A stretch of 64,000 nt of DNA from the NCBI GenBank assembly GCA_048013815.1, contig CM106585.1, positions 7,626,001 to 7,690,000 on the forward strand, written 5' to 3'. Numbering within the stretch: position 1 is the first letter of the stretch; each line of letters starts with the position of its first letter. A program made the position numbers and the translations under genes. Below, piece by piece: positions 21,401-46,785 of this stretch. The notes under the pieces are model-generated. The model did no database searches, was not told the DNA's origin, and was given only the letters and a program-made list of their open reading frames with translations. Source of the DNA: Setoptus koraiensis (taxonomy: Eukaryota > Animalia > Arthropoda).

Positions 21401-22678
21401 TCTATACTTAAAAGTTGCAACGACACTTGACCAGTTGGGCCAGTTATACAGGTAAATGGCAGCTATGATAATGCACACTTGTTGCACTTGTTGCTCTTGC
21501 TGCTCTTGTTAGCACAATGTGCGTGCCGCTCGAAATCACAGTTACTATACACCGACCTCCACATCACCTACAAACACAGCAACACAGATTCGCTTGACCA
21601 GTCCTCACTCAATCCACTGACTGGTCAATCCATTTGACTGGCGCAAGTGACGTTCGTGACCACCCACATGACATATTATATCGCTCTGGCTCTCTTTTGC
21701 ATTGACAGCAATGGCGTGCATGCCGCCACCAGTATCACTTTCAATTGGCTCACATCGGCCTAAAATAACAATGACAGCGCCAGCAAACTAACAACTGACC
21801 AAACGAGAGAGTAATCACTCTTACTTAGCGATATCTGACAACAGTGCAGATAGTTGCAGCCACGATCAAGGTGTATTGTTGCTGCTTGTTTCAGGCTTTT
21901 TTCTTCTGTCAACCATGAAACAACTGCCACTTACACTTGCTACAATCGCAAGAAATGGCCGCTTGATACGATGATGCTCCAGTTGACTCGACACAGATAA
22001 ACACAGGGGGAGAGAGAGAGAGCTGGCAATTTTGTCAACTACCGAGCCAACTATCGATTTCAAGGTTGTTTGTGTGAGCTGTTCCATCGGTCTATATTAC
22101 CTATTCCTTTTCGAGAGACAATATCGACCACACACACAAATAGACATCATCATTATCATCATTAAGTGAAAGATTTGCGAACAAGTGTGCGATGATTATC
22201 TACCATTGCCCTACATGGACACCCCCTCTAAATGACCAATCCTAAACAGACTGTTTTGCCATACACTCGAACGAGATAATCGTTTCTCTGTCATGAATGA
22301 CTTCAATGGTCCGAAGATCAAGTCCACCGACCCCCATTCATAGTGACCAATATAGAGACCAATAACACAGACACAATTCACTTGAGAATTATAACTGACT
22401 TATTTATTTATATATATTATCTGCTTTTCTTTATTATCCCCCTGCTCCAATCCACCACAAATTTCAACTTATACACAGGAGTCTATGTATCGAGAATGTA
22501 CGATGGTCCAGCTACGGAGTCACTGTCCGGACTTATATTTCCTGGTGATCGTATAATAGCAATTAACGACAAATCAATAGAGCACCAACCAGATTATCCC
22601 ATATCTGAAGTGAACAGACAGATAGGGAAGAGCGATAAAATATTGCTTAAATTAAAACTTTACAACATAGATCAATAA
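13018..22678 (+). CDS. Giant low-complexity (Q/T/N/S/H-rich) protein with one C-terminal PDZ domain, KIAA1614-like; 3 exons, ~2693 aa
   Basis: Exons 13018-20408, 20630-21120 and 22479-22678 total 8082 nt (2694 codons). Donors are GC|GTAAGT (20409, phase 2) and AAG|GTAAGC (21121, phase 1). Acceptors CAG|T (20630) and CAG|GA (22479) restore frame. Joining exons 2 and 3 gives VELCRTSGTPWGFFVAIGTSNNVKG-VYVSRMYDGPATESLSGLIFPGDRIIAIND, a PDZ fold (GF loop, GDxI). The 7.4-kb open first exon argues for real coding. First ATG is at 13018; the ORF track starts at TTG 12979. The KIAA1614 resemblance is from memory only. Confidence 0.8.
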
Positions 22679-22759
22679 ACATGATGTTACACAACATCAT
22701 CACTATTATTATTCCCCTGTTCTGATTACTTGTGTCATATACCGTATGTGTTATCTCAA
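22016..22759 (+). repeat. Direct repeat A (end of intron 2, PDZ last exon, short 3' flank); partner at 25931-26669
   Basis: Same sequence at a constant offset of 3915. ORFs 22343-22678 and 26258-26593 are identical. The left edge falls in a (GA)n tract. Confidence 0.95.
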
Positions 22760-25700
22760 TATCATGTTCCGAGTCTCTTCTCAACGTATGCTACACGATG
22801 TAGCCTACAACCAACTAATAATCGTCAGATAGCTGTTACTATTAAAGGGATTTTGAGAAGGCGTACAAAACAATTATCATAATAATTAATCTGTTCAGTA
22901 GCGATAGGTCTAATACGAAGTAATAAGCAAGCTAATATATTCAACTAACTGACTAGACATAAGTGACTCGATAATTCTTCTCTACTTTCCTAGCTCAAGT
23001 ACTACGCTATCAGTAGAAAGTGTTAGCAATAGCGCTTGCGATTACTGATAGCAATCTTCAAATTTGCTATCTCGATTAAGTCAGCTACATCAAGTTTCCG
23101 GTTCAAATTATCCTACAAATAACCCACATAATCAATTAGTAATGGTAACAGATAATATCGCGATACTATGGCATTGTAATGACAACTGACCATCAATAAA
23201 ATCCAAACTGCACTCTTTTGATGAAGTATTAAATATTTGTTAAAAAATGTTTTGTTTTTTACTATTGTAATTAAAAATCGCTTGTAGCTAGAAATGAATA
23301 TATATTTATATACAATGATACATAAGTAAATATAAGACTCAGATTGTCTGTGGTGAAGCTTGTCCATGTGTGGGCTCCAGTGATGAGTCGGTTGACAAGG
23401 TTGTTCAAGAAAATATTACCTAGAGGTGATTTGAATGTTATTTACAAGTGCTATTTCCATTACTGACGATTGCATCACTAGTTTTTAGCACGGTACGGAC
23501 ATTTAAAATGTTTGACATATAAGTGAGACTCTTTAGGCAAGTCTGCAGATTTCAATTTTATGAATGTCACAATTTGCGGCTCAATTTTAATCACAATACG
23601 TTCATCGCTTATTCTTGACACCTCCCTGACAATCGTCCAGGGGCCGTTTTCTTTGTCGTTTGATATACTCACAGTGTAGGATGATAAACCAAGATGACAG
23701 TTAGATTGGTTGAGGAAGAAAGCGAACGAATCAATTCTAAATGGCTGAGCAAATTGAAATGTTATTTCGCCTGGGTCACTCCAAAAAGTGCTACCACGCG
23801 CAAAATCAGTTCTGCAATAGAGGTTAGGATTGTTATTTTCGCTAGCGGGACTTGCAGGGCTTACGTTGCAAATATTGGAGGATACTGACGGCGATGAAGT
23901 CTGCTGTGGTGGTGATGAAGATGATGATGAAGATGATGATGAAGATGAACTGCTTGTAGACGCTGCCCTTGCACGACTAAAACTTTCAGGACGAGGACCC
24001 TTGGGACGAGGACTTTCAGGACGAAGACGGAAGTGACGTTTCCAGTAAAGGGGTCTATGGATTCTAAGGTTATGTATAGTAGGCGAAAGGTCGCCGATAA
24101 TGGATGACTTAGGGCATATTATTCCGTCCAGCTCGTCCGCATTAGCACATTTTTTGCTTGTAAGTGTATACACTTCGGCATCAATTGTGTTGTACATACA
24201 CTCAAAATAAACTAACAGTAGCAACATCTCAGAATCTGTTTGGCAATGGTCTAGACATCTAGTACCTGTAATCCGGACATACTTGACGACACGTTTTTCG
24301 AAAAATAAGTGCTGCCAGGACCTGCACCAGTAGTTTGAGTAATCAATTATTTTAGTCCAATTCTTAGAGTCCGTTGATACCTCTATAATGTAGGAGAATG
24401 AGTGTCGATTGTCGTCCAATAAAAGCATCCTTATATTGTTTACAATGAAAGGACGTCCGAAAGCAACTTGAATACATTCCCTCCTTGCTTGGCCTGGCTT
24501 TGCAATAGTATGATTTGTGCATGTTCTTGGAGTATAGTTTCGGTCGCTAGAATCAATCAAGTCTTGCTTATGTCGACCTTTTTGAGTTTCAGCATAGTAT
24601 TCCCAAGTTGCGATGTTGCGATTATGTATAAGATAACCTCTTATTGAGTCCTCCGTTGTGGCATTACCCTGAGAGAGTGTAGACAAAGTAGCTAAAGGTG
24701 TCCTTGCGTCATTCGATCCCGTGTTAGGTGACTTTATGCCGAGAATTTTTCTCTCACTTAAGCTAGTATTGATATTATTGGGGCTAGGAACATGTTGCTT
24801 CAGAGAAGATTGCCTCCGCTAATGAATTATTGAATAGGAAAAGAGTAATGATTCACGATAAGAATTAGTAAAAAAGTTACTAAATTTGAATTGGAATTTT
24901 ATTCTTTTGCTGATGTGCCATACTACTCACCTTGCCAATTTTAGTTGCCATTTGTGCCTTGTTGTAAGGTATTTTGTACTCGCAGAATATTGCTTTTATT
25001 TCTGATGATTTAAGTAGTGATAGCCGCACGGATGCGAGTAAATCTTCAAGAAGTTGTGCTCTGACAACTGGAGATCCAGTGGCCCTCTTACTGTAATAAC
25101 TGCATATGGCCCTGAGAATTATAGGCTCGGGGGCATAAAAAGAGTTACGCTTAACCATTGTTTTTATCTCATCTACATCTAGGTCTAAAAATTCCTCGTG
25201 TTTAAGGATACTCTCAGCGTTTTTATCAAAATAGCGCTCGCACGAGATTAATAATTGATTGAGATCATACATTTTAGCCGCCCTGTAGATGGACCAAATA
25301 TTCTCTTGATCTATGTGTAGCCTAAGGTATTGTGATATATCGCAGACTAGATTGTTGAAACAAAATGTTCTTGCAGTACCCAATAGATCGATAATATCAC
25401 CCGAAGATAGGTCATGAAGTGTCAATCTTCCAGAATAAACATATTTAAGTAATAATCTAAATGATTTCAAATCTGTATCAGGTAATTCAATTCTAGTTAG
25501 GTCTGATTCTCTCATGCCATTGTATAATAGTGCGTTGAAGTAGTCGCTCCTAACAGCTAATATGCCTCTATTAACTTTAACTTCTTGTCCTTCAATGATG
25601 AGGGTGAGATCACTCATGTGCGATTGTTCATAAAGGGATGAAATATCGCCATTGAACTCTTCTAAATGCTCTATCGTTTCCATTTCGTCAATATCTGTGA

Positions 25701-25848
25701 TGGAATAGTAGGTGTGATAATAGTCGTGGTATAATACTAATAATAATGGTTTAAGAAATTGTGTGGATATATAGAGTTTGGTTGTTGTGTTTTTCTTTGA
25801 GGTATCAATTATATTGTATTGGGTGATGTGATAGTAATAGTATATACT
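22759..25848 (-). repeat. ~3.1-kb inverted duplicate of 32028-35051 (whole BTBD9-like cassette with flanks)
   Basis: The reverse complement aligns by eye from the upstream intron (ctattatcacatcacc..gatacctcaaagaaaaacacaacaacc) to gagactcggaacatgatat. The right boundary is approximate because of low complexity. Confidence 0.93.
23478..25683 (-). CDS. BTBD9: BTBD9-like BTB-BACK plus two discoidin/F5-8-like domains, copy 2 (derived, inverted); 2 exons, ~697 aa
   Basis: Exon 1 is 25683-24931 with donor AAG|GTGAGT. The intron is 24930-24819 and ends TAG|CGG. Exon 2 is 24818-23478, phase 0. BTB motif SDLTLIIEG...ILAVRSDYFNALLYNGMRES. C-terminal motifs RGYLIHNRNIAT, SFSYIIEVSTD..NWTKIIDYSNYWCRSWQHLFF and HFKCP match BTBD9 (RGMLIP.ENIAT, CRSWQ, HFECP). 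Confidence 0.85.
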
Positions 25849-25930
25849 TAATGATAATGATATGTGTAGCCTAACGTAGCCAGTTTAGTTCAAAATTGAA
25901 AAGTTTTGCGACCACCCTTTATACAGTTGT

Positions 25931-26669
25931 GAGAGAGCTGGCGATTTTGTCAACTACCGAGCCAACTATCGATTTCAAGGTTGTATGTGTGAGCTGTTCC
26001 ATCGGTCCATATTACCTATTCCTTTTCGAGAGAAAATATCGACCACACACACAAATAGACATCATCATTATCATCATTGAATGAAAGATTTGCGAACAAG
26101 TGTGCGATGATTATCTACCATTGCCCTACATGGACACCCCCTCTAAATGACCAATCCTAAACAGACTGTTTTGCCATACACTCGAACGAGATAATCGTTT
26201 CTCTGTCATGAATGACTTCAATGGTCCGAAGATCAAGTCCACCGACCCCCATTCATAGTGACCAATATAGAGACCAATAACACAGACACAATTCACTTGA
26301 GAATTATAACTGACTTATTTATTTATATATATTATCTGCTTTTCTTTATTATCCCCCTGCTCCAATCCACCACAAATTTCAACTTATACACAGGAGTCTA
26401 TGTATCGAGAATGTACGATGGTCCAGCTACGGAGTCACTGTCCGGACTTATATTTCCTGGTGATCGTATAATAGCAATTAACGACAAATCAATAGAGCAC
26501 CAACCAGATTATCCCATATCTGAAGTGAACAGACAGATAGGGAAGAGCGATAAAATATTGCTTAAATTAAAACTTTACAACATAGATCAATAAACATGAT
26601 GTTACACAACATCATCACTAGTATTACTACCATATTCTGATTACTTGTGTCGTATAAGTGTTATCTCAA
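25931..26669 (+). repeat. Direct repeat A' (second copy of the PDZ last-exon segment)
   Basis: Matches 22016-22759 from gagagagctggc to ttatctcaa. It ends 5 nt before the SYVN1 stop codon on the opposite strand. Confidence 0.95.
26394..26593 (+). pseudogene. Duplicated PDZ terminal exon (orphan or alternative last exon)
   Basis: Intact acceptor (ATACACAG|GA) and a coding sequence identical to 22479-22678. It encodes only the C-terminal half of the PDZ domain. Confidence 0.6.
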
Positions 26670-26674: not shown

Positions 26675-28624
26675 TCAAGTAAATGGACCAGTTTGTTGTC
26701 CGCTAGTGGCAGTGGGGCCAGTTGTGGGACGAGCTACGGAACTTGTTGTCGGCGCTGTTGTCGGCGCTGTTGTCGGAGCTGTTGCTGATGCCGTTGTTGG
26801 TGCTGTTGTTGGAGCTGTTGCTGATGCTGTTGTTGGTGTTGTTGTTGGAACGCTGGTATGAGCAGTAGAGGAGGTAGTGGGAACAGGTGGAGCAGCGCTG
26901 GTAGTTGAAGTATTGATACTTATAGTCGGTGCCATAGTAGCACCATGCTGAAGGAGAAATTGGGAGAAGGCTTGCATTAGTGCAGCTGAGGCAGCGTCTG
27001 GAACGGGACAAAGTGGAGGGTTCAATCCAGGTTGCTGTGGACCTGTCGGTCTCGCATTGGTGGTATTCGATGTAGATCCACTTGATGTTGGGGTGCCGGT
27101 TGTAGAAGAAATGTTTGTTTCTGTTTTAGGTTGTCCAGACGAATCGGGTTGCTGTTGTTGCTGTTGCTGCTGCTGTTGTTGCTGCTGATGCTGTTGTGCA
27201 AGGTTTATCTGAGCTGTCTGTAACATATTTTGAACGTTCAAATGAGTCACCATGGCTTGAACAAACATCTGAGCGAAAGTTTGCATCATTATAACAGGCA
27301 TCTGATCATACATAATGATAGGATCCTGATTTGGATGAACATTGTTGTTTCCTGGGGCCGGTCTCGCAGCCCCAATATTTGGAGCCGCTGGATGAGCTCG
27401 AGGGCCAGCTCGCGGAGGCACAGCTTGTCCTTGTTGATGATTATTCTGTTCGGCGGGAGTACGTAAGATGTCCATACGACATGTGGGACAGGTCTGCTGC
27501 CTTTGGAACCACGATCTCAAGCATGACACATGGAATATGTGATTGCAAGGCAGTTTTTTAGAAGTTCCATTGCCTATCATCTCTTCGCGACAAATAATGC
27601 ATATATTATCTGAGTTGGCCAGTTCCTCTGGAGTTGCATTGGGGTATAAAGTATTCATATTCCGGATAGCTCTTCTAGACATTATAACATCACTAAATGC
27701 CTTCTTCAATGTTCGCATGCTAAGATACATGGGCCGGATAGCGAACAAAGGAAAATTGTGGAATTTGATCATGACTGCAATAAATATTATATATAATAAC
27801 ACCTTCATGATTCCCATGACTAGCTCTGTGTAAAGAAGGCACACTGCTTTCTCCTCCCAGGGGTTGTCACTAGTCAAGTCAATCCAATGCAGTACATATT
27901 TCATCAGTATGTTAAGTGTGACTACAAACAGTATTGCGTATTCAAAACCAAAGACTAAATGTACGCCAGCTCCTTTTATCAGGGTGCTATTGTAAGCAAA
28001 GTAAATGAATGTGCAATCACAAGTTGCTAGTAGACTCAATAAGGACAGTATTCTTATGTGGAATAGCACTGAGATGTTTGGGCTCCGTTCCATGAAATCT
28101 ATTCTATCATCTGCTAACCAATGGAAACATTTGAGGAATAATAGTAGTGCAAATAATCCGATAAATCTGGGACTAAGTTCGTCTCTGAACACTGTAAATG
28201 CAAGACAGGTCTCTGTTAAAGCGTACCAGCACCTCTCTATAAGATGCTCAAGTTCTGCTGCTCTCAGATTTCCAAAGAATATCTTGCGAAATAGCTTTCC
28301 TAACAATAGGATCATCACTAGAGATTGTATATAAATAATCTGGTTGGTGTGAAGACAGACACATAATAGTAGACATAGTGGACGCATGGTGATTTTGGTT
28401 AGGTGGGATAGAGAAAATTTTTAGTTAGTATCGAACATATGATAACGAAGAGAATGGTTTTATGTTTTGTTTGCAATCAATCGAATGTTACTTACAGCCA
28501 TAGAGGGATTGGATTTGGTGATATAGACCACAGATGGATAAAATTGTTTCTTCTGATAGAAGGCATTGCCAATGACGGCTGTGGTCATCAGGACCGATCC
28601 AGTTGTAATCAATGCTGCCTTCAT
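26675..28624 (-). CDS. SYVN1: E3 ubiquitin ligase synoviolin/HRD1; 2 exons, ~597 aa
   Basis: Exon 1 (28624-28496) encodes MKAALITTGSVLMTTAVIGNAFYQKKQFYPSVVYITKSNPSMA. Intron 28495-28340 has GTAAGT...CAG and a TACTAAC inside. Exon 2 (28339-26675) starts IIYIQSLV and contains FFGNLRAAELEHLIERCWYALTETCLAFTVFRDE and the RING-H2 CIICREEM...CNHIFHVSCLRSWFQRQQTCPTCR. Confidence 0.96.
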
Positions 28625-29368
28625 TGTAACAAACTATTTGATTTACCCAATAAATCGAGTAGTTAGATTATGTCTATTCAACAAATTGTTTTAATTATTT
28701 CATCTTTACTGTTGTAATCAAATGTTTTAATACAAATAAATAGATGAGTAAGGGCCGGAATCTATCTTTTCCATCTTCACTTCCCAAATTTAGTAATGCA
28801 GAATCCTCGCTCTCGCATGATTCATCATTTGTTGTCATTTATACCACGATGAAACACCCTGTAACCAGTGTGTGAAACACAATAGGAACGAATGTGTTTC
28901 TATGAAGATCCGATAGGCGCTTTGTGCTTTCTCAACTTTTAAATCAACGAAACGGTTATCATTGATGAGATGGCCTTATTGGTGTTGTCACTATACTGTT
29001 GTGGCATTCCCATTCTCTGCGCCTCTCGCGGACATTCAGTGAAATGCCTTCACTATCATTAGTAGGGCTAACCAAATCGGCGGTTATTTTCAAAAAATCT
29101 TCGTCAAGTTGACGACGTCAACCAAACCAACTTGTTACTAATTTTTACTATTTTTTCTGTGTCCCGGTGCTCTTGATATGATCCAAAATCCTAGATCGGA
29201 AATGATCCGTTTTGTAATTAATAGTTGCCACAGATAATGCCACAGATTTTACAAAACAACTCATTTCCTTTTGAAATAATGCACTTGTATTCCTTCTTCA
29301 TTAACTCTAGTTTGTGCAATAGTTTTTGTCACATCTAATCATAACAATTATTATTTCACTCGGCATAC

Positions 29369-30110: not shown

Positions 30111-30644
30111 TTGCAAGTTTTCATTTCATATTTCACTAAAAAAGACGTCGTTTAAGACCAGAATTAACCTTGTATTTCAACTCTCCCAGGTTAGAACACG
30201 GCCTCAAAATTAGAATTCCGCAAAAACGGGCGTGGCTGGTGAATGTCAAAGCGGAAACAGGAATGAGTCAGATTTCTGGATTTGCCTGAGAGAGATCTAC
30301 CTCATCATACCTTACTTTTGGAAATGGAGGACCCAACCGATAAATAAAAACACCCCGAAATGGGACTACCCCTTTGCCTATCAATTGTCACTAATGATTA
30401 ACTAGATTAACTAGCCTTTTTTTGTGAATTGAACAGAACTACATTGGGTCTACAATATAACTTACAGCATCAACAACAACACCAGCAACAATGTTATTCA
30501 TTTAGGCGCAACAAATTCAATTGGCTCACTTTTGAGGAATTGCGCCGCACAATGTGCCGTTATCTGTTCGCAATTGTATCATCATTTGGAAGACACCCTA
30601 GAGTAGATCCAACATGACCGGTCGTTGGCTTCGTTGTTGCGTGT

Positions 30645-30808
30645 GCAATGGACATTGTGTGTGTGTGTGTGTGTTTCCTTTTGGTTGGTTCGATTGAATT
30701 CGATCTATATTTCTGTGCATGGTTATGCGAAAAACTATAGCAACAACAACAACTAAAGCACAGTGTAAAATAAGAATTGAGCATAAAAATAAGTTTGTTG
30801 CGCTTTTG

Positions 30809-32027: not shown

Positions 32028-35000
32028 TATATATATATTACTATTATCACATCACCTGATACAATATAATTGATACCTCAAAGAAAAACACAACAACCAA
32101 ACTATATATCCACACAATTTCTCAAGCCATTATTATTAATATTATACCACGGCTATTATCACACCAACTATTCCATCACAGATGCTCATAGATATTGACG
32201 AATATGATGACGAGATAATAGACAAAATGAAATGGTGCCAAACGATAGAGCATTTAGACGAGTTTAATGTCGACATTTCATCCCTTTATGAACAATCGCA
32301 CATGAGTGATCTCACCCTGATCATTGAAGGACAAGAAGTTAAAGTTAATAGAGGCATATTAGCTGTTAGGAGCGACTACTTCAACGCACTATTATACAAT
32401 GGCATGAGAGAATCGAACCTAACTAGAATTGAATTACCTAATACAAATTTAAAACCATTTAGATTATTACTTAAATATGTTTATTCTGGAAGATTAACAC
32501 TTCATGACCTATCTTCGGGTGATATTACCGATCTATTGGGTACTGCAAGAACATTTTGTTTCAACAATCTAGTCTGTGATATATCACAATACCTTAGGCT
32601 ACACATAGATCAAGAGAATATTTGGTCCATCTACAGGGCGGCTAAAATGTATGATCTCAATCAATTATTAATCTCGTGCGAGCGCTATTTTGATAAAAAC
32701 GCTGAGAGTATCCTTAAACACGAGGAATTTTTAGACCTAAACGTAGATGAGATAAAAACAATGGTTAAGCGTGACTCTTTTTATGCCCCCGAGCCTATAA
32801 TTCTCAGGGCCATATGCAGTTATTACAGTAAGAGGGCCACTGGATCTCCAGTTGTCAGAGCACAACTTCTTGAAGATTTACTCGCATCCGTGCGGCTATC
32901 ACTACTTAAATCATCAGAAATAAAAGCAATATTCTGCGAGTACAAAATACCTTTTTACGACCCGGCACAAATGGCAAGCAAAAATACTAGGGTAAGTAGT
33001 GTGGCACATCAACAAAATTTCTAATTCAAATTTAGTAACTTTTTTACTAATTCTTATCGTGATTCATTACTCTTTTCCTATTCAATAATTAATTAGCGGA
33101 GACATTCTTCTCTAAGGCAGGATGTTCCTAGTCCCAATTATAGCAATACTAGCTTTAGTAAGAGAAAAAGTCTCGGCATAAAGTCACCTAACAAGGGATC
33201 AAGTCACACAAGGACACCTTTCGCTAATTTGTCCACACTCTCTCAGGGTGATGCCACAACGATGGACTCAATAAGAGGTTATCTTATATACAATCGCAAC
33301 ATCGCAACTAGGGAATACCATGTTGAACCTCAAAAAGGTCGACAGAAGAAAGACATGATTGATTCTACCGACCGAAACTATACTGTAAGAACATGCACAA
33401 ATCATACTGTTGCATATCCAGGCCAAACAAGGAGGGAATGTATTCAAGTCGCTTTCGGACGTCCTTTCATTGTAAACAATATAAGGATGCTTTTATTGGA
33501 CGACGGTCAACGCTCATTCTCCTACATTATAGAGGTATCAACAGACTCTAGGAATTGGACTAAAATAATTGATTACTCAAACTACTGGTGCAGGTCCTGG
33601 CAACACTTATTTTTCAAAGAACGTGTCGTCAAGTATGTACGGATTACAGGTACTAGAAGTCTATACTATGGCCAAGTAGCCTCTCAGATGTTACTAGTTT
33701 ATTTTGAGTGTATGTACAACACAATTGATGCCGAAATGTATACACTTACAAGCAAAAAATGCGCTAATGCGGACGAGCTGGACGAAATAATATGTCCCAA
33801 GTCATCCGTGATCGAGGATAATTCCATCGCTATAGCTCGTTCGCCCATTAGCACAATGCGTCACTTCCGTCTTCGTGCTAAAGGTGCAGCGTCTACAAGC
33901 ACTTCATCTTCATCATCACCTCAGCAGTCTTCATCGCCGACAGCATCCTCCAATATTTGCAACGTAAGCCCTGCAAGTCCAGCTAGCCAAAATAACAATC
34001 CTAACCTCTATTATAGAACTGATTTTGCGCGTGGTAGCGCAAATTGGAGTAGTCCAAGTAAAATAACATTTCAACTTGCTCAGCCATTTAGAATTGATTC
34101 GTTCGCTTTCTGCCTCAAGCAATCTAACTGTCATCATGGTTTATCATCCTACACTGTGAGTATATCAAATGACAACGAAAATGGTCCCTGGACGATTGTC
34201 AGGGAGGTGCCAAGAATAAGCGATGAACTTATTGTGATTAAATTTGAGCCGCAAATTGTGACATTCATAAAATTGAAATCTGCAGACGTGCCTACAGCGT
34301 CTCAATTATATGTCAAACATTTTGAATGTCCCTACCGTGCAACAACTAGTAATGCAATCGTCAGTAATGGAAATAGCACTTGTAAATAACATTCAAATCA
34401 CCTCTAGGTAATATTTTCTTGAACAACCTTGTCAACCGACTCATCACTGGACTCCACACATGGACAAGCTTCACCACAGACAATCTAAGTCTTATATTTA
34501 CTTATGTATCATTGTATATAAATATATATTCATTTCTAGCTATAAAGAATTTATAATTACAATAGTAAAAAACTAAAGATTTTATCAGATCAGACTCAAT
34601 CATCAAACGAGTGGAGTTTGGAATTTATTGATGGCCAGTTGTCATTACAATGCGATAGTATCGCGATATTATCTGTTACCATTACTAATTGATTATGTGG
34701 GTTATTTGTAGGATAATTTGAACCGGAAACTTGATGTAGCTGACTTAATCGAGATAGCAAATTTGAAGATTGCTATCAGTAATCGCAAGCGCTATTGCTA
34801 ACACTTTCTACTGATAACGTTGTACTTTAGCTAGGAAAGTAGAGAAGAATTATCGAGTCACTTATGTCTAGTCAGTTAGTTGAATATATTAGCTTGCTTA
34901 TTACTTCGTATTAGGCCTATCGCTACTGAACAGATTAATTATTATAATAATTGTTTTGTACGCCTTCTCGACAGCCCGTTAATATTAACAGCTATCTGAC

Positions 35001-35051
35001 GATTATTGGTTGGGCGTAGCAGACGCTGAGTCGAGACTCGGAACATGATAT
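32028..35051 (+). repeat. Forward copy of the ~3-kb BTBD9-like cassette (partner of the inverted 22759-25848)
   Basis: Homology covers the upstream intron end, both exons, the intron and ~660 nt of 3' flank. Confidence 0.93.
32182..34389 (+). CDS. BTBD9: BTBD9-like BTB-BACK plus two discoidin/F5-8-like domains, copy 1 (probable parent); 2 exons, ~700 aa
   Basis: Exon 1 is 32182-32991 with donor AGG|GTAAGT. The intron is 32992-33096 and ends TAG|CGG, conserved in the other copy. Exon 2 is 33097-34389 and is open in frame with ORF 33229-34389. It has the same BTBD9 motifs and ends YVKHFECPY. The ATG directly follows a CACAG acceptor, implying an upstream non-coding exon. Confidence 0.85.
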
Positions 35052-36400: not shown

Positions 36401-39400
36401 ATGGCCAAAGTTAATTCTAGATTTGAACGTTCATGCATTACTTATGTTGTGACTTTTGTGTATGTCCTATCATCAATTGTGATATTAGCAACAACAGCAG
36501 CAACAGCAACAAATGATGTAACTAAAGCAATATCGGGCCCCCAATATACGGTGGTGGCTCTCAAAAAGCTGCGGCCAAACGATGTCTACCCAATAAGTGT
36601 AACAACGAACAACATAGATCAGATAGTTGAGTTCACTGTCAGTATTACTGGTGGCCGTGACTCTAATAGAGAACAAAGCAAGGAGGTGTCGTTTAATGTG
36701 GAACCGAACAGGACAGAGCATGTGAGTATTAAAATAGATGATTGGCCCTCATTGAAATACACACTGACAATCATGGGTAGGTCGGTGCAAGACGATGGAC
36801 GCACGCTTAATATATCGCATGAGATAAATTTGCAATATGAGGCAAGAAGTTTTCTTGCGTTCATACAATCAGACAAGGCCATATATAGAGCAGGAGAAAG
36901 AATTCAATTTAGAACAATCTTCGTGACGACCTCGTTGAGGCCAAAAATAATCAAACAAAATGTCAGCATTACAATAGAGGACTCTAAACAGAATATAATA
37001 AAACATTGGACAAAATTGTCAACAACAAAGCATGGAATAATAGGCGAACAGTTACAATTGTCCGAGCACGCAAATTTAGGCGACTGGACAATAATTGTTG
37101 AGGTCAACGATGAACAAGTGGCGAGAAAGCAAGTGCGCCTGGCCGAATACACTCTGCCCAAATTCTCTGTCGATGTCAAGCTACCAAAATATGCCACCTA
37201 CAACAAGTCCAGCATTGTGGCCAATGTCAAAGCCACCTATACCTACGGGAAACCTGTACAAGGTCAGGTGACGCTAACGGTGCAACCGTTGGTTCGTTTC
37301 AGCAACATTAGTGCCAGGCCGTTGAATCAGTTACAATATAAGGCAAAATTAACTGATGGTTACGCAAGTATTCCAGTTGACATAGTGAAAGATTTGTCAT
37401 TGGAACGAGATGACTTTGAGCGAGAAATTGAATTCTTTGCCCTCGTCCAAGAGGAACTAACTGGACACAAATACAACAAGAGCGAAGTGATGAAAATCTA
37501 TAATAAAGACATCAAGATACAGCTCATAAAAACGAGTGACACCTTCAAGCCGGGTCTCAATTATCCGCTATTGTTGAAGGTGGCCCATCAAGACAACACG
37601 CCAGTAGAGGACAACGGGGCCGGCGTTAAGTTGAGATATCACTACAGGAACTCAGATCAAGATTCGGCTATTGTGCAATTAAAATTGAGAAAGGGTCTGG
37701 CCGGGCACACGTTGAGCGTGCCGAGCAAGGTAAATTTTAAGAGCAGTCCGGGTAATTTCACACCATTCAGTTTGAATTTGGTGGCCGAATACAACAATCA
37801 AATCTATTCATTAGAGGAGATAATTAAATCAGAGTCGCCCAGTGACAACTTTATGCAAATAACTCACACAAGTCGCAACGATAACCAACTGATTGACCCC
37901 ACCGACAGTGGCGTCAACGTGGGCGACGATGAAGAGTTCACAATTCAGTCTACCGAGCCAATGCAACAGGTTATTGTTGAGATAATAGCCAGAGGAACCA
38001 TCGTGTATCACACAATTGTTGATGGTCGCGGCAAACGAGAGACCTCATTCCGAGTGACAATCACACAGTCGATGTTGCCAACAGCGAGAATAGTTTGCTA
38101 TTATATGCGCTCGCAAAACAGAGAGATTGTGGCCGACGCAATTAATTTGTCGGTGTTAGGAGTGTTCAAGACAGACGTCAGAATAGCAACAAGTGAGCAA
38201 GTTTTGGAGCCCGGAAAACCGATTGAGATCGATGTCAGAACGAAGCCCAGATCTTTTGTGGGCATATCGGTGATAGATCAGAGTGTTTTACTGCTCAGAT
38301 CGGGCAACGACATCACCAAGGGCGATGTGCTCAAACAAATGAAGCAAGCCTACGAGGGCACCCACGACGGCCGTCTGTCGTCGTTCAGTGCCAAGAGTAT
38401 ATTTGACGACTCCAATTTGATTGTTATAACAAACGGCATTTTGTACGATGGCCCTGAGACGCGCGAGGGCAAACTACTGAGTTGGCAGGGCGGTTTGGGC
38501 ACAACGTCGGGCAGCAAGGCACCCAAAAATGGTTTTATCGCGTTGGATCAATTAATTTTAGAGGACAGACTGTTGGCGCCCGAGTTTCACATTGACCGTC
38601 CGCCATCGGATAGCATCACCATCCGGCAGATGTTTCCCGAGACGTGGCTGTGGGCCAATTCAACGTCGGACAGCGACGGCGTTGCCCGATTCAAGAGTCA
38701 GACACCGGACACTATTACGTCGTGGTCAATTAGCGCCATTAGCATCAACGATTTAGAGGGTTTAGGTCTGGTGGACAGGCCGGCGAAATTGAACGTCTTT
38801 AAGCAGTTCTTCATCCGGCTCAATATGGCCCCGTCGATAATCAAGGGCGAGACAATGAGAATCCAGGCCATCATACACAATTATTCGAAGCGTTCCACTA
38901 GGGCCGTTGTTAGCCTGGACAACAGAAACGGTGACTTTGAGTTTGTGGAGGCGGCCAATGTTGTGGAGGACGAGAAACGGTCCCAGGACCAACAGCAAGT
39001 GGTGAGGATCGAGATAGGCGCCGAAGAGGGCAAGGCAGTGTCGTTTTTGGTGACACCAAAAAAGTTGGGCCACTTAGATGTGACAGTGAGGGCGCAAGCG
39101 GAGCGATTCAGCGACGCAATACGCGAAACTGTCCTCGTCAAGCCAGAGGGTCAAACGCAATATTTCAACAAGGCCATACTGGTGGCAGTGGACAATAGCA
39201 ATAGTAACACCAATAATAATAATAATAACAACGGCAATAATGACAGCAATGACAGTGCTGCGGGCAGCTACAAGAACAATGTGACCATAGATGTTCCTGC
39301 CAATGCCGTGGCCAATTCAACGAGGGTTCAACTTTCGGCCGTGGGTGACATTATGAGCTTCAGTCTGAACAATTTAGACAGCGACTCGTTGTTGCGGTTG

Positions 39401-41562
39401 CCCATCGACGGCGGCGAACAGAACACCATGCGATTGCTGGCCAATTACATAAGTTACGACTATTTATTGCGCTCGACAAACACAGACAAATCCACAAGAG
39501 ATTATTTGCGACGCCAAGACAAAATATTGCGCAACATTGAGAACGGATATCAGCAACAGCTCACCTACAAGCGCCAAGATGGCTCATTCAGCGAGTTCGG
39601 CGACAAAGACAAACACGGCAGTACCTGGCTGACGGCCTACGTGTTGAGGGCACTGTCTCAGGTGAAGGATGTCATAACGGTGGACAGAGCGGTTATGCAG
39701 CGCGCCGTGGCCTATTTGGCGGACCGTCAACAAACGGACGGATCGTTCGAGGAGCTGGGCCAGATGCACAATGGCGATCTGAGGCCCGTGGCGTCGTCGT
39801 CGCGCCAACCGGAACGCGAGCCAACAACATCCATTTATTTGACTGCCTATGTTCTCATAGCGCTCATACACAACAAAGACCTGGCACAAAAGCCAGAGAT
39901 TTCGCTGGTGCCCATAAGGGATATTTTGGACAAAGGCTTGAAAAATCTGCAACAACAAATCGACACCAGCAACGATCCGTTTGAGCTGGCCATCGTTAGT
40001 TACGTGATGCAATTGGCGTCCAACAACGACATTGCAACGGGCAATTGGCACGACAACCAAGACTCTATTATCTATTCACGACTCAAACAGGTGGCCAAAC
40101 AAACTGACCAGTTCACCTGGTGGCAGTCAGCGACGGCAGCCATAGGAACTAGCACGGGTCAACTGGATCAACGTCATCAGTCGAGGCCGGTGAGTGGGCC
40201 GAGTGACTCGCTGGAGCGCGAGTTTGACTTCACTTCATCATCGTCATCGACGAGCCAAAATCACGACCACCAAGTGCCGCCACTGAAACCGCTTGCAGTG
40301 ACCACAAAACACTCTGAGCATTTGTTTGTGCCGGACAGTGTCGCTGTCGAGATGACCTCTTACGCACTAATAGCCATTCTGTCCAGACAAAAGCCCGAAC
40401 TGGATTATGCACTTCCGGTTGTTCGTTGGCTTGTGTCGCAACAAAATTCACACGGCGGCTTTGCATCGACACAAGACACAGTTTTAGCGCTTGAGGCCCT
40501 CAGTAAATATCAGTTAATGGCTGACAATGGTGCCAACAATAACAAGGCCACCTCTTTGGACATTGATTTCAGTTATGCCAATCCGGACAAGGACCCCAAG
40601 CGTCTTCAGTTGAGGCCCGTTGTTTTCGATCAGATGCTGGTGAAAAAATCCAACAGTTTGGTGCATCAAACCAAAGAGCTACCCAACAACGCCACATGGG
40701 TGAACATTGAGGCCACTGGACACGGCTCGGCAGTGCTGCAGCTATCGTGGCAATACAATCTGTTGGTGTCCGCCGAGGCGCCCAGTTTCTTTTTGAATCC
40801 TCAATTGGACAAATCATCCACTGAACACTATCTGCAATTGAGCATTTGTAGCTATTACAAGGCTGGCGAAAGCTCAAACATGGCCGTCATGGAGATAGAT
40901 CTGCCCTCGGGCTATGTGGCCGAAGTGGAGGCTCTGCCCAGCATAACACGAACCAAACACATCAAACAGATTTATTTGTCGCAACAAGACACCCATTTGT
41001 CTGTCTATTTCGACAAGGTGAGTAGTGACAGTAACACGTTATCTTATCCTTATTATCATTGAATTCCGGACGATTATCTAATGTCGCTCTCGTCTATCTT
41101 CGTCCCATCTGGCAACCCCCCGCCCCCCCGCACCGCCAACTGGATAAACAGATGACACGAGAGGAGATTTGTTTCACTGTACCCGCACACAGGAACTCAT
41201 TTGTGGCCAACAACAAGCAAGTTGCTGTCACCATTTACGATTATTACAATCGTCACAAAGCGGCCAGGATATTCTATGAGCCTCACATGTTGAGCACTTG
41301 TGAGATTTGTGATAAAAAGGATTGCGGAACACAATGCGCCAAGGTGAGAAGGAGCTCAAAGCTACTGGATGGCGATGACAATCGCAAGACCAACGACAAA
41401 ATCAATGGACAGACAAACAACGGCGCAGCTACCAGCAAATTTGGCCAACGGGCGACCATCACAACATTCAACTATTGGACAAGCCTGTTGGTTGTTGTTG
41501 TTGCCAGTTGTTGCTATCAATCAATTATGTCGACAGTCCTTCACACAATGTCATTCATTTAG
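36401..41562 (+). CDS. Thioester-protein family member (alpha-2-macroglobulin/CD109-like TEP) without the thioester Cys; 2 exons, ~1675 aa
   Basis: Exon 1 is 36401-41017 with donor AAG|GTGAGT. The intron is 41018-41151. Exon 2 is 41152-41562, phase 0. It has an N-terminal signal peptide, FIQSDKAIYRAGE, FPETWLW, TPDTITSW, DGSFSEFG, STWLTAYV, GGFASTQDTVLALEAL, MAVMEIDLPSGY and IYDYY, and a hydrophobic C-terminal tail. The thioester position reads PIDGGEQ. Confidence 0.92.
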
Positions 41563-41850
41563 ACACTTTTGACATTGTCTATCAATTTGTTGTCTATCAA
41601 TTGATTTAATCCTGAATTATTGAATCATCTCGAACATAAATGTTGCAATTATCTGATAACAATCACAGACAGACGATAGATCACGTAACAGACTAATACT
41701 CTCTCAAAACCCAATTCATGTAAGCCAAAAGAAATAAATTAATAACACAAACGATATCAGTGCCCACGATATAGTTAGCATATTTGTGTCAATACATTGC
41801 TCAGAATGTTTTTTCCTCGTCGATCTAACTTGGGAGACACTTCCTGTGAG
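41192..41850 (+). repeat. TEP 3' tail (most of last exon, 3' UTR, AATAAA at 41733); direct-repeat partner at 46105-46785
   Basis: Alignable by eye from ggaactcatttgtggcc to acttcctgtga, with scattered substitutions and indels. Confidence 0.92.
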
Positions 41851-42812
41851 AGGCCCCCTGTGTTTGTGTCTACGATTGACTAGTATTGTAGCTGCAACTG
41901 CACATTGATTAGCTATTATTGTCATTTGCTTGTCTGACGATATATGATTGTCATGCTGCTTATACTGTGGTCGTTGATGCCGTCCTTGTCTCATAATTAA
42001 TTCCATTAGAAGAAAATGATGATAATAATGTTATCATCGTGATGGTTGTCGTCGTCTCAACTTGCATTTGCTTACGCTCTCTTGAACGTTATCACCGTCA
42101 CAACTACTATCACACTTCTATTGCTACTTCACAGATAATTATGTACGAATATGGAGTTCTTAGATAATCCAACTAATACTAACTACTAAGTGCAGTAAAT
42201 TAGCAACTGAAATCGGAAAAGCATGGTATTGTGGCAGCTACATTGGCGTCTAGGCAACAGCATCAGCTCGTGATTATTATTTTTATTAGTAGTATGAGCA
42301 ATAATGTTCATTGCAGACAATTATCGTTTATCATTATTATCATACCAACAATTACTAACGTTGCACCCAGGTCACAATGAGGATACTGTTATCAAGATGA
42401 TGCCGATTCTTGCTATGATTGTCACATGCATGCAATCGAATAATATTCTCTCAAACCGATAGAATCATCATTAAAAGATAGACGGACCGATCAGGAGATC
42501 AGCATTAATTGAATTCCGACTATTAATATTAAAAATACTATTATTATCGTCACTGATACCATACCAAAATATTATTATTTTTGTTACTAACACTTTAATA
42601 CACGTTAAAAGCGAGTATTATTGGTGACAATCCGGCAGCAACAAGCGCAGCAACACTGCTTGATCAAGGTGCAACAAGACTCCGCCATCGAGCAAAATAA
42701 ATCGATCCAAATATATGCACAACTGGTGGCCTTTTCAATCAATTAATCAATCCCCTTTTTTGATTCTAATTAATCGCAAACTGCAGTGAGCTACGTGTAG
42801 TACTTCTCCATC

Positions 42813-45800
42813 ATGGCGACAGTATTGGCGTCTTCAATAATAAGAGAGAGCTCGGACATTGAGAGCTTGCTGTCTCTGAATCCAAAGTCGCGAGGCTATG
42901 CAAGTGTTGTGCCCACGGTGCAGACTAAGGTGGCTAAAAAACATTGGAAAAGAAACCAGGATAAGGGCTCGAGCGTTGTTAAAAAAGAGTTAATTGTAGC
43001 CAATTTCGACGACATAAAACATACGACATTGAGCGAAAGAGCCGCTCTCAAGGAGGCATCTAGGTGCCTGAAATGTGCCGATGCACCGTGCTCCAAGAGT
43101 TGTCCCACCCAAATTGACGTGAAAGCTTTTATTAGCATGATATCTAGCAAAAATTATTATGGTGCCGCAAAGATTATTCTCTCGGACAATCCGCTTGGCT
43201 TGACCTGTGGAATGGTGTGTCCCACTAGCGATTTGTGCGTCGGTGGCTGTAATTTGTATGCAAGCGAAGAGGGGCCCATCAATATTGGCGGTTTGCAACA
43301 ATTTGCCGTAGAGATGTTCAAGCTAATGAATTTGCCCCAGGTGAGATCGCCTCAGGTGCAGGCTCTAGTGGACGAGGGACCCGAAGAGTTGAAGCAAGCC
43401 TTCAGAGCGCCCATCGCCCTGTTGGGCTGCGGTCCGGCCAGCATAAGTTGTGCAACTTTTCTGGCGCGATTAGGTTACCAAAACCTGACCATATACGAGA
43501 AGAACGGCTTTGGCGGTGGCCTGTCGCTCACCGAGATACCCCAGTACCGGCTACCGTACAATGTGGTGGATTTCGAGATACAATTCATGCAGGATCTAGG
43601 CGTTCAAATTAAATACAACAGCCCGTTGAGTGCCAAGTCGCAATTGACAATTGACAATCTGCTACACAGAGACAAATATGAGGCCGTGTTTGTGGGAGTG
43701 GGCAAGCCCCAACCTAAGATAGCGTCCACATTTCGCCACTTGACCAAAGAGAACAGATTTTTCACCTCGAAAGAGTTTCTGCCTTTGGTGTCACAAGCGA
43801 GCAAGTCCAATTTCGAGCTTCGCACGGCCAGCTCGGCATGCGGCGCCAGAAAACAAAACGGCGCTGGCTGCTGTAAATCGTCGTCGCCAGCAACAGGTTG
43901 TTGCGCTGCGATAAAGCTCAATGTCAATGTGAATCAATTGCCAAAATTGTACGGCCGAGTCATAGTGCTGGGCTGTGGCGACACAGCCTTCGATTGTGCC
44001 ACCTCGGCAATCAGATGCGGCGCCACCAAGGTTTTCGTTTGTTTTCGGCGAGGATTTAGCCACATACGGGCCGTGCCAGAGGAAATGAGTTTGGCCATAG
44101 AGGAGAAGTGCGAATTCATGCCATTTATGACGCCCAAAGAGGTTATTTTGTCTGGCGACGGCAAAATAGTTGCAATGGACTTTTACAAGACAGAGCTGAC
44201 GGACGACGCGTCGGACAGAGTGACAATAGACGAAAATCAAATTATTAGATTGCGCGTGGACTTTATAATATCGGCCTTCGGGTCACAATTGGACGATCCC
44301 GACATGCTGGCCGCACTCAGGCCCATCAAGCTGGACGACGAGACGGGCATTCCCGTTATCGATGCGCACACAATGATGAGCTCGCAGCCGGGCGTCTTTT
44401 GCGGGGGCGATCTGTCTGGGCACACCGAGACAACAGTGGAGGCCGTCAACGATGGCAAGACGGCCGCTTGGAATATCCACAAGTATATCCAGGCTAAGCG
44501 TCAGGTGAAATTGCCGCTAGAGGTGGCAAACTTGATGCCGCAATCGTTGCCCATCATGTACACGCCCGTCGACATGATCGACATAAGCGTTGAGGTGTGC
44601 GGCATAAAATTTGAAAATCCCTTCGGTCTTGCCAGCGCACCACCGACCACTAGCTCGGCGATGATTAGGCGCGCCTTTGAGGCGGGCTGGGGCTTCGCCG
44701 TAACGAAAACGTTTGCCCTAGACAAGGACAATGTCACCAATGTGTCGCCGCGCATAGTCCGCGGCACCACCTCGGGCCACAGCTACGGGCCGGGCCAGGG
44801 CAGCTTTTTGAACATAGAGCTAATTAGCGAAAAGTCGTGCCAATATTGGCTGACCAGCATCAGAGAACTGAAGAAGGTGCATCCGACAAAGGTGCTCATA
44901 GCGAGCATTATGTGCGGCTTCGTAGAACAGGACTGGAAAGAATTGGCAAGCCGGGCCCAAGAGTCGGGCGCCGACGCCCTAGAATTGAATTTGTCCTGTC
45001 CGCACGGAATGGGCGAGAAGGGCATGGGTCTGGCCTGTGGCCAGAAGCCCGAGTTAGTGCGCCAGATATGCGCCTGGGTGCGCTCTGTCACAACCGTACC
45101 CTTCTTCGCCAAGCTCACGCCAAATGTCACCAACATCGACGCCATTGCCCGGGCGGCTTACGAGGGCAAAGCCGACGGAGTCACCGCCATCAACACAGTG
45201 TCGGGCCTCATGACCATCGGGCCGGACGGTCGGCCCTGGCCAGCGGTGGGCCACGAGGCCAAAACTACATACGGCGGTGTGTCGGGTAACGCCATTCGGC
45301 CGCTCGCCCTCAGAGGTGTCGCCTCGGTGGCCAAGGCACTGCCCGGATTTCCTATTTTGGCCACCGGTGGCATTGATTCGGCCGAGACTGCGCTCCAGTT
45401 TATATATGCGGGTGCCAGTTGTGTTCAAGTGTGCAGCGCTGTCCAAAATCAAGATTTTTCCGTCGTTAGCGATTACATTTCCGGTTTGAAGGCGCTATTG
45501 TATTTGCGCGCCTCAAAGCAATCACACAAATGGCTTGGACAGTCGCTGAGCAAACTGCCCAAACATCAGAAGGGGCGCCCTGTGTTGCCCGTAGAGGGCG
45601 ACTTGCCCTTCTTCGGTCACTACAAGGAGCAGCGTGAATTGTTGATGTTGGAGGCTCGCAAGAAACAACTAGCAGCAACTGACGCTCATCCCATTCCAAA
45701 CGAACAACAAAACATTGAGCCCGTGAATACATTGGTGGAAAATAAACGCCTCAAGGATTATATTGGTCTGAGCAATAGTCGTATCGGACCATATAAGGAG

Positions 45801-46070
45801 CTGGACAATCGCCAGCAAGTGGTGGCAGTGATAGACAACGATATGTGTATCAATTGTGGCAAATGCTATATGACTTGCAACGATTCCGGCTATCAAGCGA
45901 TTGAGTTTAATTCAGAGACCCACATACCTAAGGTCAACGATGATCATTGCACCGGTTGCACTTTGTGTGTCTCTGTTTGTCCCATAATTGATTGTATTCA
46001 GATGGTTGAGAGAAGCGGGCCACTGTACGAGCCAAACAGAGTGAAAATTATTGTTGACGACTGCAAATAA
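42813..46070 (+). CDS. DPYD: Dihydropyrimidine dehydrogenase (NADP+), intronless, 1085 aa
   Basis: [64 protein letters not shown], the catalytic loop LNLSCPHGM, and the C-terminal ferredoxin motifs [11 protein letters not shown] and [12 protein letters not shown]. Metazoan-type N-terminus. Confidence 0.98.
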
Positions 46071-46104
46071 CAATAATAATCAATATTGCACCATCTTATA
46101 TACG

Positions 46105-46785
46105 GGAACTCATTTGTGGCCGACAACAAGCAAGTTGCTGTCACCATTTACGATTGTTACAATCGTCTCAAGGCAGCCAGGATATTCTATGATCCTCACA
46201 TGTTGACAACTTGTGAGATTTGTGATAAGAAAGATTGCGGAACACAATGCGCCAAGGTGAGCAGGAGCTCAAAGCTACTGGATGGCGATGACAATCGCAA
46301 GACCAACGACAAAATCAATGGACAGGCAAACCACAGCAAATCTAGCCAACGGGCGACCAACACAATATTCAACTATTGGACAAGCCTTCAAGTTGTTGTT
46401 GTTGTTGTTGCCAGTTGTTGTTATCAATCAATTATGTTGACAGTCCTTCACATAATGTCATTCATCTAGATAGCTTTGATGCTATCAATTTATTGTCTCT
46501 CAGTTGAGCTTATCAACCCTGAATTGAATTGTCGTGAATATGAATGTTGCAACTGATGACAATCACAAACAAATGATGAATCATCTTACAGACAAATACT
46601 CTCTCAAAACCAATTTCATGTTAGCCAAAAAGAAATAAATCAATAACACACAAATGATATCTAGCCAACGGCGACAATCCTCATAATATAGCTAGTGTAT
46701 TTGTGTCGACACATTGCTCAAAAGAGTACTCGCGTGGCAAATGTTTTTTCGTCATCGGTCCAACTTTGGTGATACTTCCTGTGAA
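46105..46785 (+). pseudogene. 5'-truncated duplicate of the TEP last exon plus 3' UTR, directly behind DPYD
   Basis: ORF 46086-46469 re-encodes NSFVADNKQVAVTIYDCY...MSFI*. It lacks the first 40 nt of the exon and the acceptor. YDYY has become YDCY. AATAAA is retained at 46634. Confidence 0.85.

Follow-up and report, generated by a model that had tools for sequence, protein, structure and literature searches.

Cycles of templated insertions are a PCAWG somatic class of rearrangement, recognised in human cancers through copy number and read pairs (PMC7025897), in which a distant template is copied in and a segment of the host is re-replicated. The donor is kept, mostly two junctions are formed and inverted segments are allowed. 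All of these features are shared by the two loci described here, although the templates in the cancers are usually much larger and the present loci are fixed germline events of gene size that have had time to diverge and carry intact genes. Constitutional complex chromosomal insertions attributed to FoSTeS/MMBIR (PMC5120786) likewise have a duplication at the inserted site and, as here, junctions with 1-3 bp microhomology or short templated insertions. The human cases are pathogenic or rare and measure from tens of kb up to Mb, whereas the present inserts of 3-4 kb come with a target duplication of 0.7 kb, and both products look functional.

Transposed-duplicated genes in Arabidopsis (PMC2869330, in which Drosophila is also cited) are, like the genes described here, non-transposon genes copied to new sites. 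They are flanked by direct repeats of host, often genic, sequence that is single at the orthologous empty site. The Arabidopsis repeats are mostly 15-400 bp and some also occur at the donor site, whereas the present ones are 0.67-0.74 kb, purely target-derived and consist of the terminal exon and 3' UTR of the neighbouring gene. Transposon target-site duplications, Pack-MULEs and Helitrons also place a foreign gene-bearing segment between direct repeats of target sequence, but the present repeats exceed any transposon target-site duplication 10- to 100-fold in length and are found without element ends or transposase. This type of scar is already described, and the two loci match cycles of templated insertions in layout. 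A sequence-only reading had known of no described system with this signature, a view that fails in the light of the layouts in the cancer, constitutional and Arabidopsis studies (PMC7025897, PMC5120786, PMC2869330).

Architecture of the two loci

The single repeat–gene–repeat architecture that had been claimed for the two loci was confirmed by BLASTN self-comparison of the window (the whole stretch of 64,000 nucleotides analysed), a repeat search and gapped alignment. The repeat coordinates first given differ by 3-8 nt from the present alignments, and every gene name was upheld by Pfam searches, which were run on exon open frames one by one. Each repeat includes the last exon of the left-hand gene (all but its first 37 nt at locus 2), its stop codon and an AATAAA, the left-hand genes being a PDZ-domain gene and TEP respectively. 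All four repeat copies carry the AATAAA, as had been noted, at 22674, 26589, 41733 and 46634. Between the repeat copies lie 3171 bp at locus 1 (22760-25930) and 4243 bp at locus 2 (41859-46101). Chance similarity of the repeats is ruled out because the E-values of the two pairs are 0 and 1e-163. Further copies of either repeat were found nowhere in the 48.8-Mb assembly, which consists of two chromosome-size contigs. The features of locus 1 are as follows.

12979..22678, plus strand: host gene 1, a large PDZ-domain gene (ORF list and Pfam, exon joins putative), with a 2477-aa open frame at 12979-20412, an exon to ~21140 that begins the PDZ domain and a last intron of ~1.3 kb
~22451-22678, plus strand: last exon of the PDZ gene (Pfam PDZ profile positions 25-79 in ORF 22343-22678)
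22016..22759, plus strand: A1, left copy of direct repeat 1 (against 25931-26669: 744 nt, 97.7% identity, 2 gaps)
22760..25846, minus strand: B', inverted copy of the BTBD9 region, matching 32032-35051 at 88-98% by segment
23478-25683, minus strand, and 32182-34389, plus strand: BTBD9-type BTB-BACK-F5/8C genes (Pfam)
25847..25930, no strand: junction filler of 84 nt between B' and A2, without homology to A or B
25931..26669, plus strand: A2, right copy of direct repeat 1, an orphan copy of the PDZ last exon
26675..28387, minus strand: SYVN1/HRD1-type E3 ligase gene (Pfam TPR_SYVN1_N 2e-91, and RING), convergent with the PDZ gene
32032..35051, plus strand: B, donor BTBD9 locus, with exon ORFs 32182-33024 and 33229-34389

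The left edge of A1 falls in a (GA)n run, from which the repeat extends through the final ~430 nt of the intron and the last exon of the PDZ gene to the stop codon (a TAA overlapping the AATAAA at 22674) and ~80 nt of 3' flank. The junction of A1 with B' is base-precise, with 1 nt of microhomology. B' contains an intact gene of two exons (ORFs 24880-25683 and 23478-24686) with the Pfam domains BTB, BACK and F5/8C, and it retains the intron together with flanks of ~160 nt (5') and ~660 nt (3'). The donor BTBD9 locus is the sole other copy in the genome and has no flanking repeats. At the other end of B', positions 25856-25923 of the filler match four scattered places in the genome at 79-87%, which identifies the filler as a fragment of a short dispersed repeat; a search of the genome gave only these matches and no exact template for the 84 nt.

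The last-exon ORF of the PDZ gene (22343-22678) and its copy in A2 (26258-26593) are identical at 111 of 111 amino acids. A2 ends 5 nt from the SYVN1 stop codon (26675), and poly(A) hexamers of the minus strand, which read TTTATT on the plus strand, occur in it at 26345 and 26318. As judged from this position, A2 probably supplies the 3' UTR of SYVN1 on the opposite strand. The second locus has the following features.

36401..41562, plus strand: host gene 2, a thioester-containing protein gene of the TEP/A2M family (Pfam MG2, MG3, A2M_BRD, A2M, TED, A2M_recep)
41189..41858, plus strand: direct repeat 2, left copy (gapped alignment, motif positions)
41859..46101, plus strand: inserted DPYD segment, with an intact intronless CDS at 42813-46070 and the full DPYD Pfam architecture
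46102..46793, plus strand: right copy of direct repeat 2, with an orphan remnant of the C-terminal exon of TEP and a copy of the TEP 3' UTR with AATAAA at 46634

Splice sites read from the sequence place the last TEP intron at 41018-41151 and the last exon at 41152-41562. The left copy of the repeat starts 37 nt inside this exon, passes the stop codon (41560-41562) and the AATAAA at 41733 and continues for ~125 nt. The two copies (41189-41858 and 46102-46793) share ~670 bp at ~85% overall, with 94% in the first 230 nt and ~78% in the 3' UTR part. The TEP remnant in the right copy has an open frame at 46086-46469 with a dN/dS of 0.56 against the TEP exon, a value at which the remnant is read as evolving under relaxed constraint. 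An alternative last exon for TEP was rejected, as the copy has no acceptor, begins 37 nt inside the exon and has this dN/dS, and read-through of the DPYD stop codon into the remnant was rejected since three stop codons lie between the frames.

The DPYD insert brought along ~930 nt of its 5' flank and no more than 31 nt of its 3' flank, and the right copy of the repeat probably serves as its 3' UTR. The donor DPYD lies on the other chromosome, at C2:18766483-18769752, and is 96% identical in amino acids. Donor homology (C2:18765637-18769764) covers 41884-42408 of the window at ~75% and 42805-46070 at 92%. It begins 25 nt past the left repeat copy and stops at most 31 nt before the right copy, at the DPYD stop codon. 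No TEP-derived repeats were found at the DPYD locus on chromosome 2. The pair has a dS of 0.35 and a dN/dS of 0.056, and the two paralogues are closest to each other, with P0001, the nearest foreign DPYD, equally far from both (~92% aa). One metagenome scan gave two eriophyoid-like contigs of more distant kin (65-67% aa), on which DPYD adjoins a DEAD-box helicase, actin and RPL19 and not TEP, and no likeness was found between the window and the DPYD flanks of these distant relatives. Gene gain by DNA-level copying with a target duplication of ~0.7 kb, which had been suggested together with gene relocation, stands with both donors identified, whereas DPYD was not relocated but duplicated from chromosome 2. 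The proposal that the duplicated 3' ends kept the neighbours functional is also plausible, since the edge of A lies so close to the SYVN1 stop codon and DPYD is followed by the copied TEP AATAAA.

An assembly or haplotype artefact, in which two alleles of one sequence were wrongly placed in tandem, would account for the 2.3% difference between the copies of direct repeat 1, as this is within the allelic range. Between the copies of direct repeat 2, however, the difference is 15% and indels are numerous. Divergence amounts to 7-12% between B' and B and to 8% between the DPYD paralogues, and the frames have stayed intact under purifying selection; the inserts are therefore genuine, distinct genes, which must have a place somewhere in the genome. 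The junctions are also unique, and the two chromosome-size contigs contain no extra copies. We consider an artefact extremely improbable.

Origin of the repeat-flanked inserts

Three classes of origin were rejected. Gene capture by a DNA transposon (Pack-MULE or Helitron) does not agree with repeats of 670-744 bp or with the lack of terminal inverted repeats above the shuffled background, and the inserts are made up solely of donor-homologous host sequence. The original argument that the repeats are too long for transposon target-site duplications is borne out, and transposon ends are absent from the insert ends. Retrocopies were rejected, as the BTBD9 intron and 5' flank are preserved in B', while the DPYD copy came with ~930 nt of 5' flank and has no A-run behind its stop codon. 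Non-allelic homologous recombination was rejected because the donor edges and target edges have no homology beyond 1 nt.

We consider each locus likely to record a single duplicative insertion that took place at the DNA level and belongs to the templated-insertion cycle type. A replicating end that had broken or stalled would have departed from the host chromosome 80-125 nt beyond the poly(A) signal of the PDZ gene or TEP and would have copied 3-4 kb from another template. At locus 1 this template would be BTBD9, 6 kb downstream and copied in reverse, and at locus 2 DPYD on the other chromosome. The end would then have re-engaged the host chromosome ~0.7 kb behind the departure point, which would leave the insert between two copies of the host terminal exon and 3' UTR. 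As expected of templated insertion, the donor is still found elsewhere at both loci and the insert lies between two copies of a host segment (744 bp and ~670 bp). The junctions of locus 1 show the very short microhomology (1 nt) and the short filler that such events leave, while those of locus 2, which is older, are blurred by 25 and 31 unassignable nt. The homology of insert and donor abuts the repeats within 0-84 nt, and these coinciding boundaries suggest one event per locus. A tandem duplication followed by an unrelated insertion at its junction is very unlikely because the insert ends are the repeat ends at both loci.

Replicative template switching, fill-in of a staggered break with capture of a fragment, and homologous integration of a chimeric circle would be expected to look the same in sequence alone. 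A staggered double-strand break, with opposite-strand nicks ~0.7 kb apart, could have been filled in while an extrachromosomal copy of the donor was captured by end joining. This would give the same final layout, and end joining would suit both the 84-nt filler and the blunt junction with its 1 nt of microhomology. It also speaks for a staggered break that breaks with long complementary overhangs are documented to produce tandem duplications (PMC8355091). Such a route nevertheless demands overhangs of 0.7 kb and a free donor copy of 3-4 kb with the donor left intact, in one case from another chromosome, and we regard it as unlikely. Alternatively, a chimeric circle joining a copy of A with a copy of the donor gene could have been integrated by a single homologous crossover with the chromosomal A (Campbell-type). 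This would yield exactly A-insert-A with both novel junctions pre-formed on the circle, and a circle-and-homology model was proposed for the repeat-flanked transposed genes of Arabidopsis (PMC2869330). The construction of the circle demands two prior steps of copying and joining, while neither an independent trace of circles nor donor-target homology that would bring them together was found, and the chance that circles were involved appears slim. A replicative template switch (FoSTeS/MMBIR or polymerase-theta-type synthesis) would seem preferable to the other repair routes.

The divergence values stand against a single-step view. The repeats of locus 1 are 97.7% identical whereas insert and donor are 88-93% identical overall, with a dS of 0.15 in the F5/8C exon, and at locus 2 dS is 0.12 in the TEP remnant and 0.35 in DPYD. 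As the repeats are more alike than insert and donor, either gene conversion or uneven rates are needed or the repeats are younger than the inserts. The latter would be the case if the inserts are older (e.g., the BTBD9 copy nested in the last intron of the PDZ gene) and the 0.7-kb repeats arose later with no common mechanism, which the lower divergence of the repeats at both loci favours. At each locus, however, the later duplication would have to fall within 0-84 nt of both boundaries of the insert-donor homology, and the gap in divergence is explained more simply by gene conversion between close repeats. Such a coincidence is in our judgement very improbable. With one templated insertion per locus, we infer that later gene conversion has held the flanking repeats more alike than insert and donor.

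Repair genes and gene order in eriophyoid mites

No Ku domain was found in the genome, and a Pol-theta-type polymerase is present. A streamlined genome without Ku-dependent end joining but with a polymerase-theta-type enzyme may favour templated insertion. In Oikopleura, a tentative link has been drawn between genome scrambling and the loss of canonical end joining (PMC11067885), and loss of C-NHEJ is described in compact parasite genomes (PMC6635534); if the present reading is true, the gall mite would parallel both convergently. In a genome this compact, selection probably keeps mainly those events whose target duplication leaves complete 3' ends to all neighbours. Were templated insertion the dominant route of gene duplication in these mites, the sites just past the poly(A) signal would be either fragile termination zones or the only places where insertions are tolerated by selection.

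Gene order is nearly wholly lost between eriophyoid genomes (10.64898/2026.08.24.746826; PMC11879100), and templated insertion could underlie this nearly complete loss. That templated insertion with variable target duplication is the dominant route of gene duplication and movement in eriophyoid mites, favoured by the loss of Ku-dependent end joining, is a tentative and rather doubtful extension. If such events are frequent genome-wide, they would provide a concrete mutational mechanism, tied to the DNA-repair gene set, for the scrambled gene order and the numerous genuine gene duplicates reported in eriophyoids, while as two isolated events they are ordinary complex duplications. Natural examples as clean as these two loci, with donor, target, junctions and outcome all readable, are unusual. 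At locus 1 a gene was copied in reverse between convergent genes with neither apparently harmed, and at locus 2 a whole gene was duplicated across chromosomes and probably borrows the 3' UTR and poly(A) signal of its neighbour.

Of the 314 kb of genome sequence that was read, one randomly chosen block of 200 kb yielded no clean further example. The same block contains a pair of paralogues that differ by an internal indel of 2.2 kb (152884-156102 and 160309-161330 of the block) and two candidates with short repeats (105 bp and 230 bp), for which no clear donor was seen. An AMP-binding open frame was also observed at C1:7579400-7580962, 42 kb upstream.

Duplicated gene ends around two inserted genes

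Both of the direct repeats from which the sequence-only reading had drawn its picture of intact genes sandwiched between duplicated 3' ends of their neighbours were recovered by self-comparison and alignment, and Pfam scans agree with its gene names. The two loci are real, well-resolved duplicative insertions with long target duplications, and contain the following features (C1, which carries the window at 7626001-7690000, and C2 are the two chromosome-size contigs of the assembly).

22016-22759 (A1) and 25931-26669 (A2): first repeat, 744 nt, 97.7% identity (BLASTN self-comparison and repeat search of the window); 3' part of a large PDZ-domain gene, comprising ~430 nt from the end of an intron, the terminal exon with the stop codon overlapped by AATAAA (22674), and ~80 nt of 3' sequence
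22760-25846: copy, in inverted orientation, of the BTBD9 gene lying 6 kb downstream (32032-35051)
26675-28387, minus strand: SYVN1 gene
41018-41151: intron of the thioester-containing protein (TEP) gene
41189-41858 (DR2a) and 46102-46793 (DR2b): second repeat (gapped alignment), from 37 nt inside the TEP last exon to ~125 nt past AATAAA (41733), stop codon included; identity ~94% over the first 230 nt, down to ~78% in the 3' UTR part
42813-46070, plus strand: DPYD coding sequence

Neither repeat was found to have further copies elsewhere in the genome in a whole-assembly search. An assembly artefact is unlikely to have produced this layout, as it is opposed by the 7-15% divergence, the unique junctions and the absence of spare copies.

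The BTBD9 copy carries the intron of the gene together with flanking sequence, ~160 nt on the 5' side and ~660 nt on the 3' side, and no third copy of the region was found in the assembly. Its junction with A1 is exact to the base, with 1 nt of microhomology, and the junction with A2 holds 84 nt of filler matching neither the repeat nor BTBD9; part of this filler (25856-25923) resembles a short (~60-nt) dispersed repeat, present at 79-87% at four other places (C2:19429196, C1:3072343, C2:11915944 and C1:10337683). On its left side the duplicated segment begins inside a (GA)n run. Its right edge lies only 5 nt from the stop codon (26675) of the convergent SYVN1 gene, so that the SYVN1 3' UTR most likely runs antisense through A2, in which minus-strand poly(A) hexamers occur at 26345 and 26318. 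Donor and copy are 97-99% identical in the BTB exon and 3' flank and ~9% diverged in the F5/8C-domain exon (32916-34600 vs 23300-25003; dS 0.15, dN/dS 0.7), a pattern that points to patchy gene conversion, to one copy evolving fast, or to both.

DPYD is not single-copy, as a second gene with 96% amino acid identity is located at C2:18766483-18769752. DNA homology between the pair covers window positions 41884-42408 (~75%, 5' flank) and 42805-46070 (92%), beginning 25 nt past DR2a and ending with the DPYD stop codon, no more than 31 nt short of DR2b. The insert has almost no 3' flank of its own, and the copied TEP 3' UTR follows directly with its AATAAA at 46634. Because TEP-derived repeats were not found at the C2 locus, the window gene is read as the inserted copy and chromosome 2, or its ancestor, as the donor. 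Strong purifying selection acts on both genes (dS 0.35, dN/dS 0.056), which are nearer to each other than to the nearest foreign DPYD. In two more distant eriophyoid-like species, represented by plant and environmental metagenome contigs, the neighbours of DPYD are a DEAD-box helicase, actin and RPL19; the order RPL19-actin-DEAD-box helicase-DPYD is common to both, and no part of it survives in this genome, where the orthologue of the adjoining helicase is at C1:5.54 Mb. Since DPYD has other neighbours in these two species, comparison of gene order indicates that its position adjoining TEP is derived, albeit in mites whose gene order is generally poorly conserved (10.64898/2026.08.24.746826).

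Although the TEP remnant behind DPYD shares its frame, read-through was rejected as three stop codons intervene, and use as an alternative exon was likewise rejected since the acceptor is missing and dN/dS is 0.56. On these grounds the remnant is best described as a decaying exon copy.

The C2 DPYD gene itself sits between ~200-bp direct repeats of sequence from upstream of a CERT-like PH-START gene (C2:18765637-18771566). The downstream repeat lies ~230-420 nt upstream of that gene, whereas only 38 nt of the upstream repeat are left in C2, with a fuller version in the window copy (42347-42531). This arrangement may represent a third, older event of the same kind.

Origin of the insertions

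Neither terminal inverted repeats nor element ends were found at the inserts, which hold only donor-homologous host DNA, and transposon capture was rejected. Retroposition was rejected as well, because the copies include intron and promoter flanks and lack a poly(A) tail.

Homology between insert and donor ends 0 and 84 nt from the inner repeat ends at locus 1 (BTBD9), and 25 and at most 31 nt from them at locus 2 (DPYD). Had the 0.7-kb duplications been separate, later events, they would have had to match those boundaries at both loci, and we therefore infer a single event per locus. This reading is complicated mainly by divergence, which is lower in the repeats than in the inserts: A1 and A2 differ by 2.3% whereas the BTBD9 pair is ~91% identical in the F5/8C exon, and the TEP remnant has a dS of 0.12 against 0.35 for DPYD. 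The UTR part of the second repeat (~78%) is, however, similar to the DPYD 5' flank (~75%). These values would be reconciled most simply by gene conversion, acting between repeats 3-12 kb apart.

We favour a replicative template-switch route, in which a copying 3' end would leave its own chromosome, copy a stretch elsewhere in either orientation and from either chromosome, and then return behind its departure point, thereby giving repeat-insert-repeat with the donor retained. It is favoured because the donor was copied without loss and because inversion, a template on another chromosome and the filler as a small third template are all naturally accommodated. A widely staggered break filled in with capture of a fragment, and Campbell-type integration of a chimeric circle, would each leave the same scar and are less favoured.

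The sequence-only reading knew of no described system with this signature, a statement that fails as published precedents match the layout. Transposed Arabidopsis genes are often found between direct repeats of host sequence that is single at the orthologous target, and Woodhouse et al. discussed both long target duplications and circle integration (PMC2869330). The two loci are thus further members of a known rearrangement class.

Gene ends, recurrence and genome setting

Both departure points are located 80-125 nt beyond a poly(A) signal. The duplication at locus 1 appears to let the PDZ gene (A1) and SYVN1 (A2) each keep a full 3' end despite their overlapping 3' regions, and that at locus 2 leaves TEP intact and would provide DPYD with a 3' UTR. 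The earlier proposal that such events survive through working 3' ends fits these retained ends, but two cases do not separate it from a break-prone termination zone. Our recurrence survey covered 314 kb (the window, a 50-kb stretch containing the C2 DPYD gene, and one arbitrary 200-kb block), and no clean further case was found in the arbitrary block. Recurrence of the pattern across this genome is probable, but is offered as a lead.

The assembly measures 48.76 Mb in two chromosome-size contigs, with almost no introns in the window genes. Mites are the nearest named relatives of the window DPYD protein, the best named mite match being the eriophyoid Fragariocoptes setiger, and many Logan and JGI contigs match it at 64-91%. 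A very small genome, poor in introns and carried on two chromosomes, is consistent with eriophyoid gall and rust mites (compare PMC11879100, PMC7738191).

A six-frame HMM search of the whole genome, run without a eukaryotic positive control, gave no match to Ku core (PF02735) or Ku_N (PF03731). In the same search DNA_pol_A (PF00476) matched strongly at C1:19995096-19996301, with a domain of Pol-theta/nu type, and weakly at C1:17151385-17152101, where the match is probably POLG. It may be that this genome has lost canonical end joining, which we note only as a lead; loss of Ku-dependent end joining accompanies compact genomes in parasitic eukaryotes (PMC6635534) and has been tentatively tied to scrambled gene order in Oikopleura (PMC11067885).

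Several other features were observed. A fold-back inverted duplication at C2:18773939-18784600 (block-local 28939-39600), with arms of ~4-5 kb at 84-94% identity and a palindromic centre (block-local 33022-33573), yields two inverted HMG-CoA reductase genes. At C1:2152776-2161873, paralogous frames of 1257 and 508 aa, 4 kb apart and 94-96% identical, differ in that the first has a 2.2-kb internal segment which the second lacks; the interval separating them contains an unrelated minus-strand frame of 584 aa. An AMP-binding open frame lies upstream of the window (C1:7579400-7580962). Finally, a simple-sequence-like repeat of ~75-90 nt (80-98% identity), probably a low-complexity coding repeat, recurs within long open frames of the window at 8572-8664, 9866-9966, 14277-14366, 18039-18164, 18427-18518 and 49295-49419.
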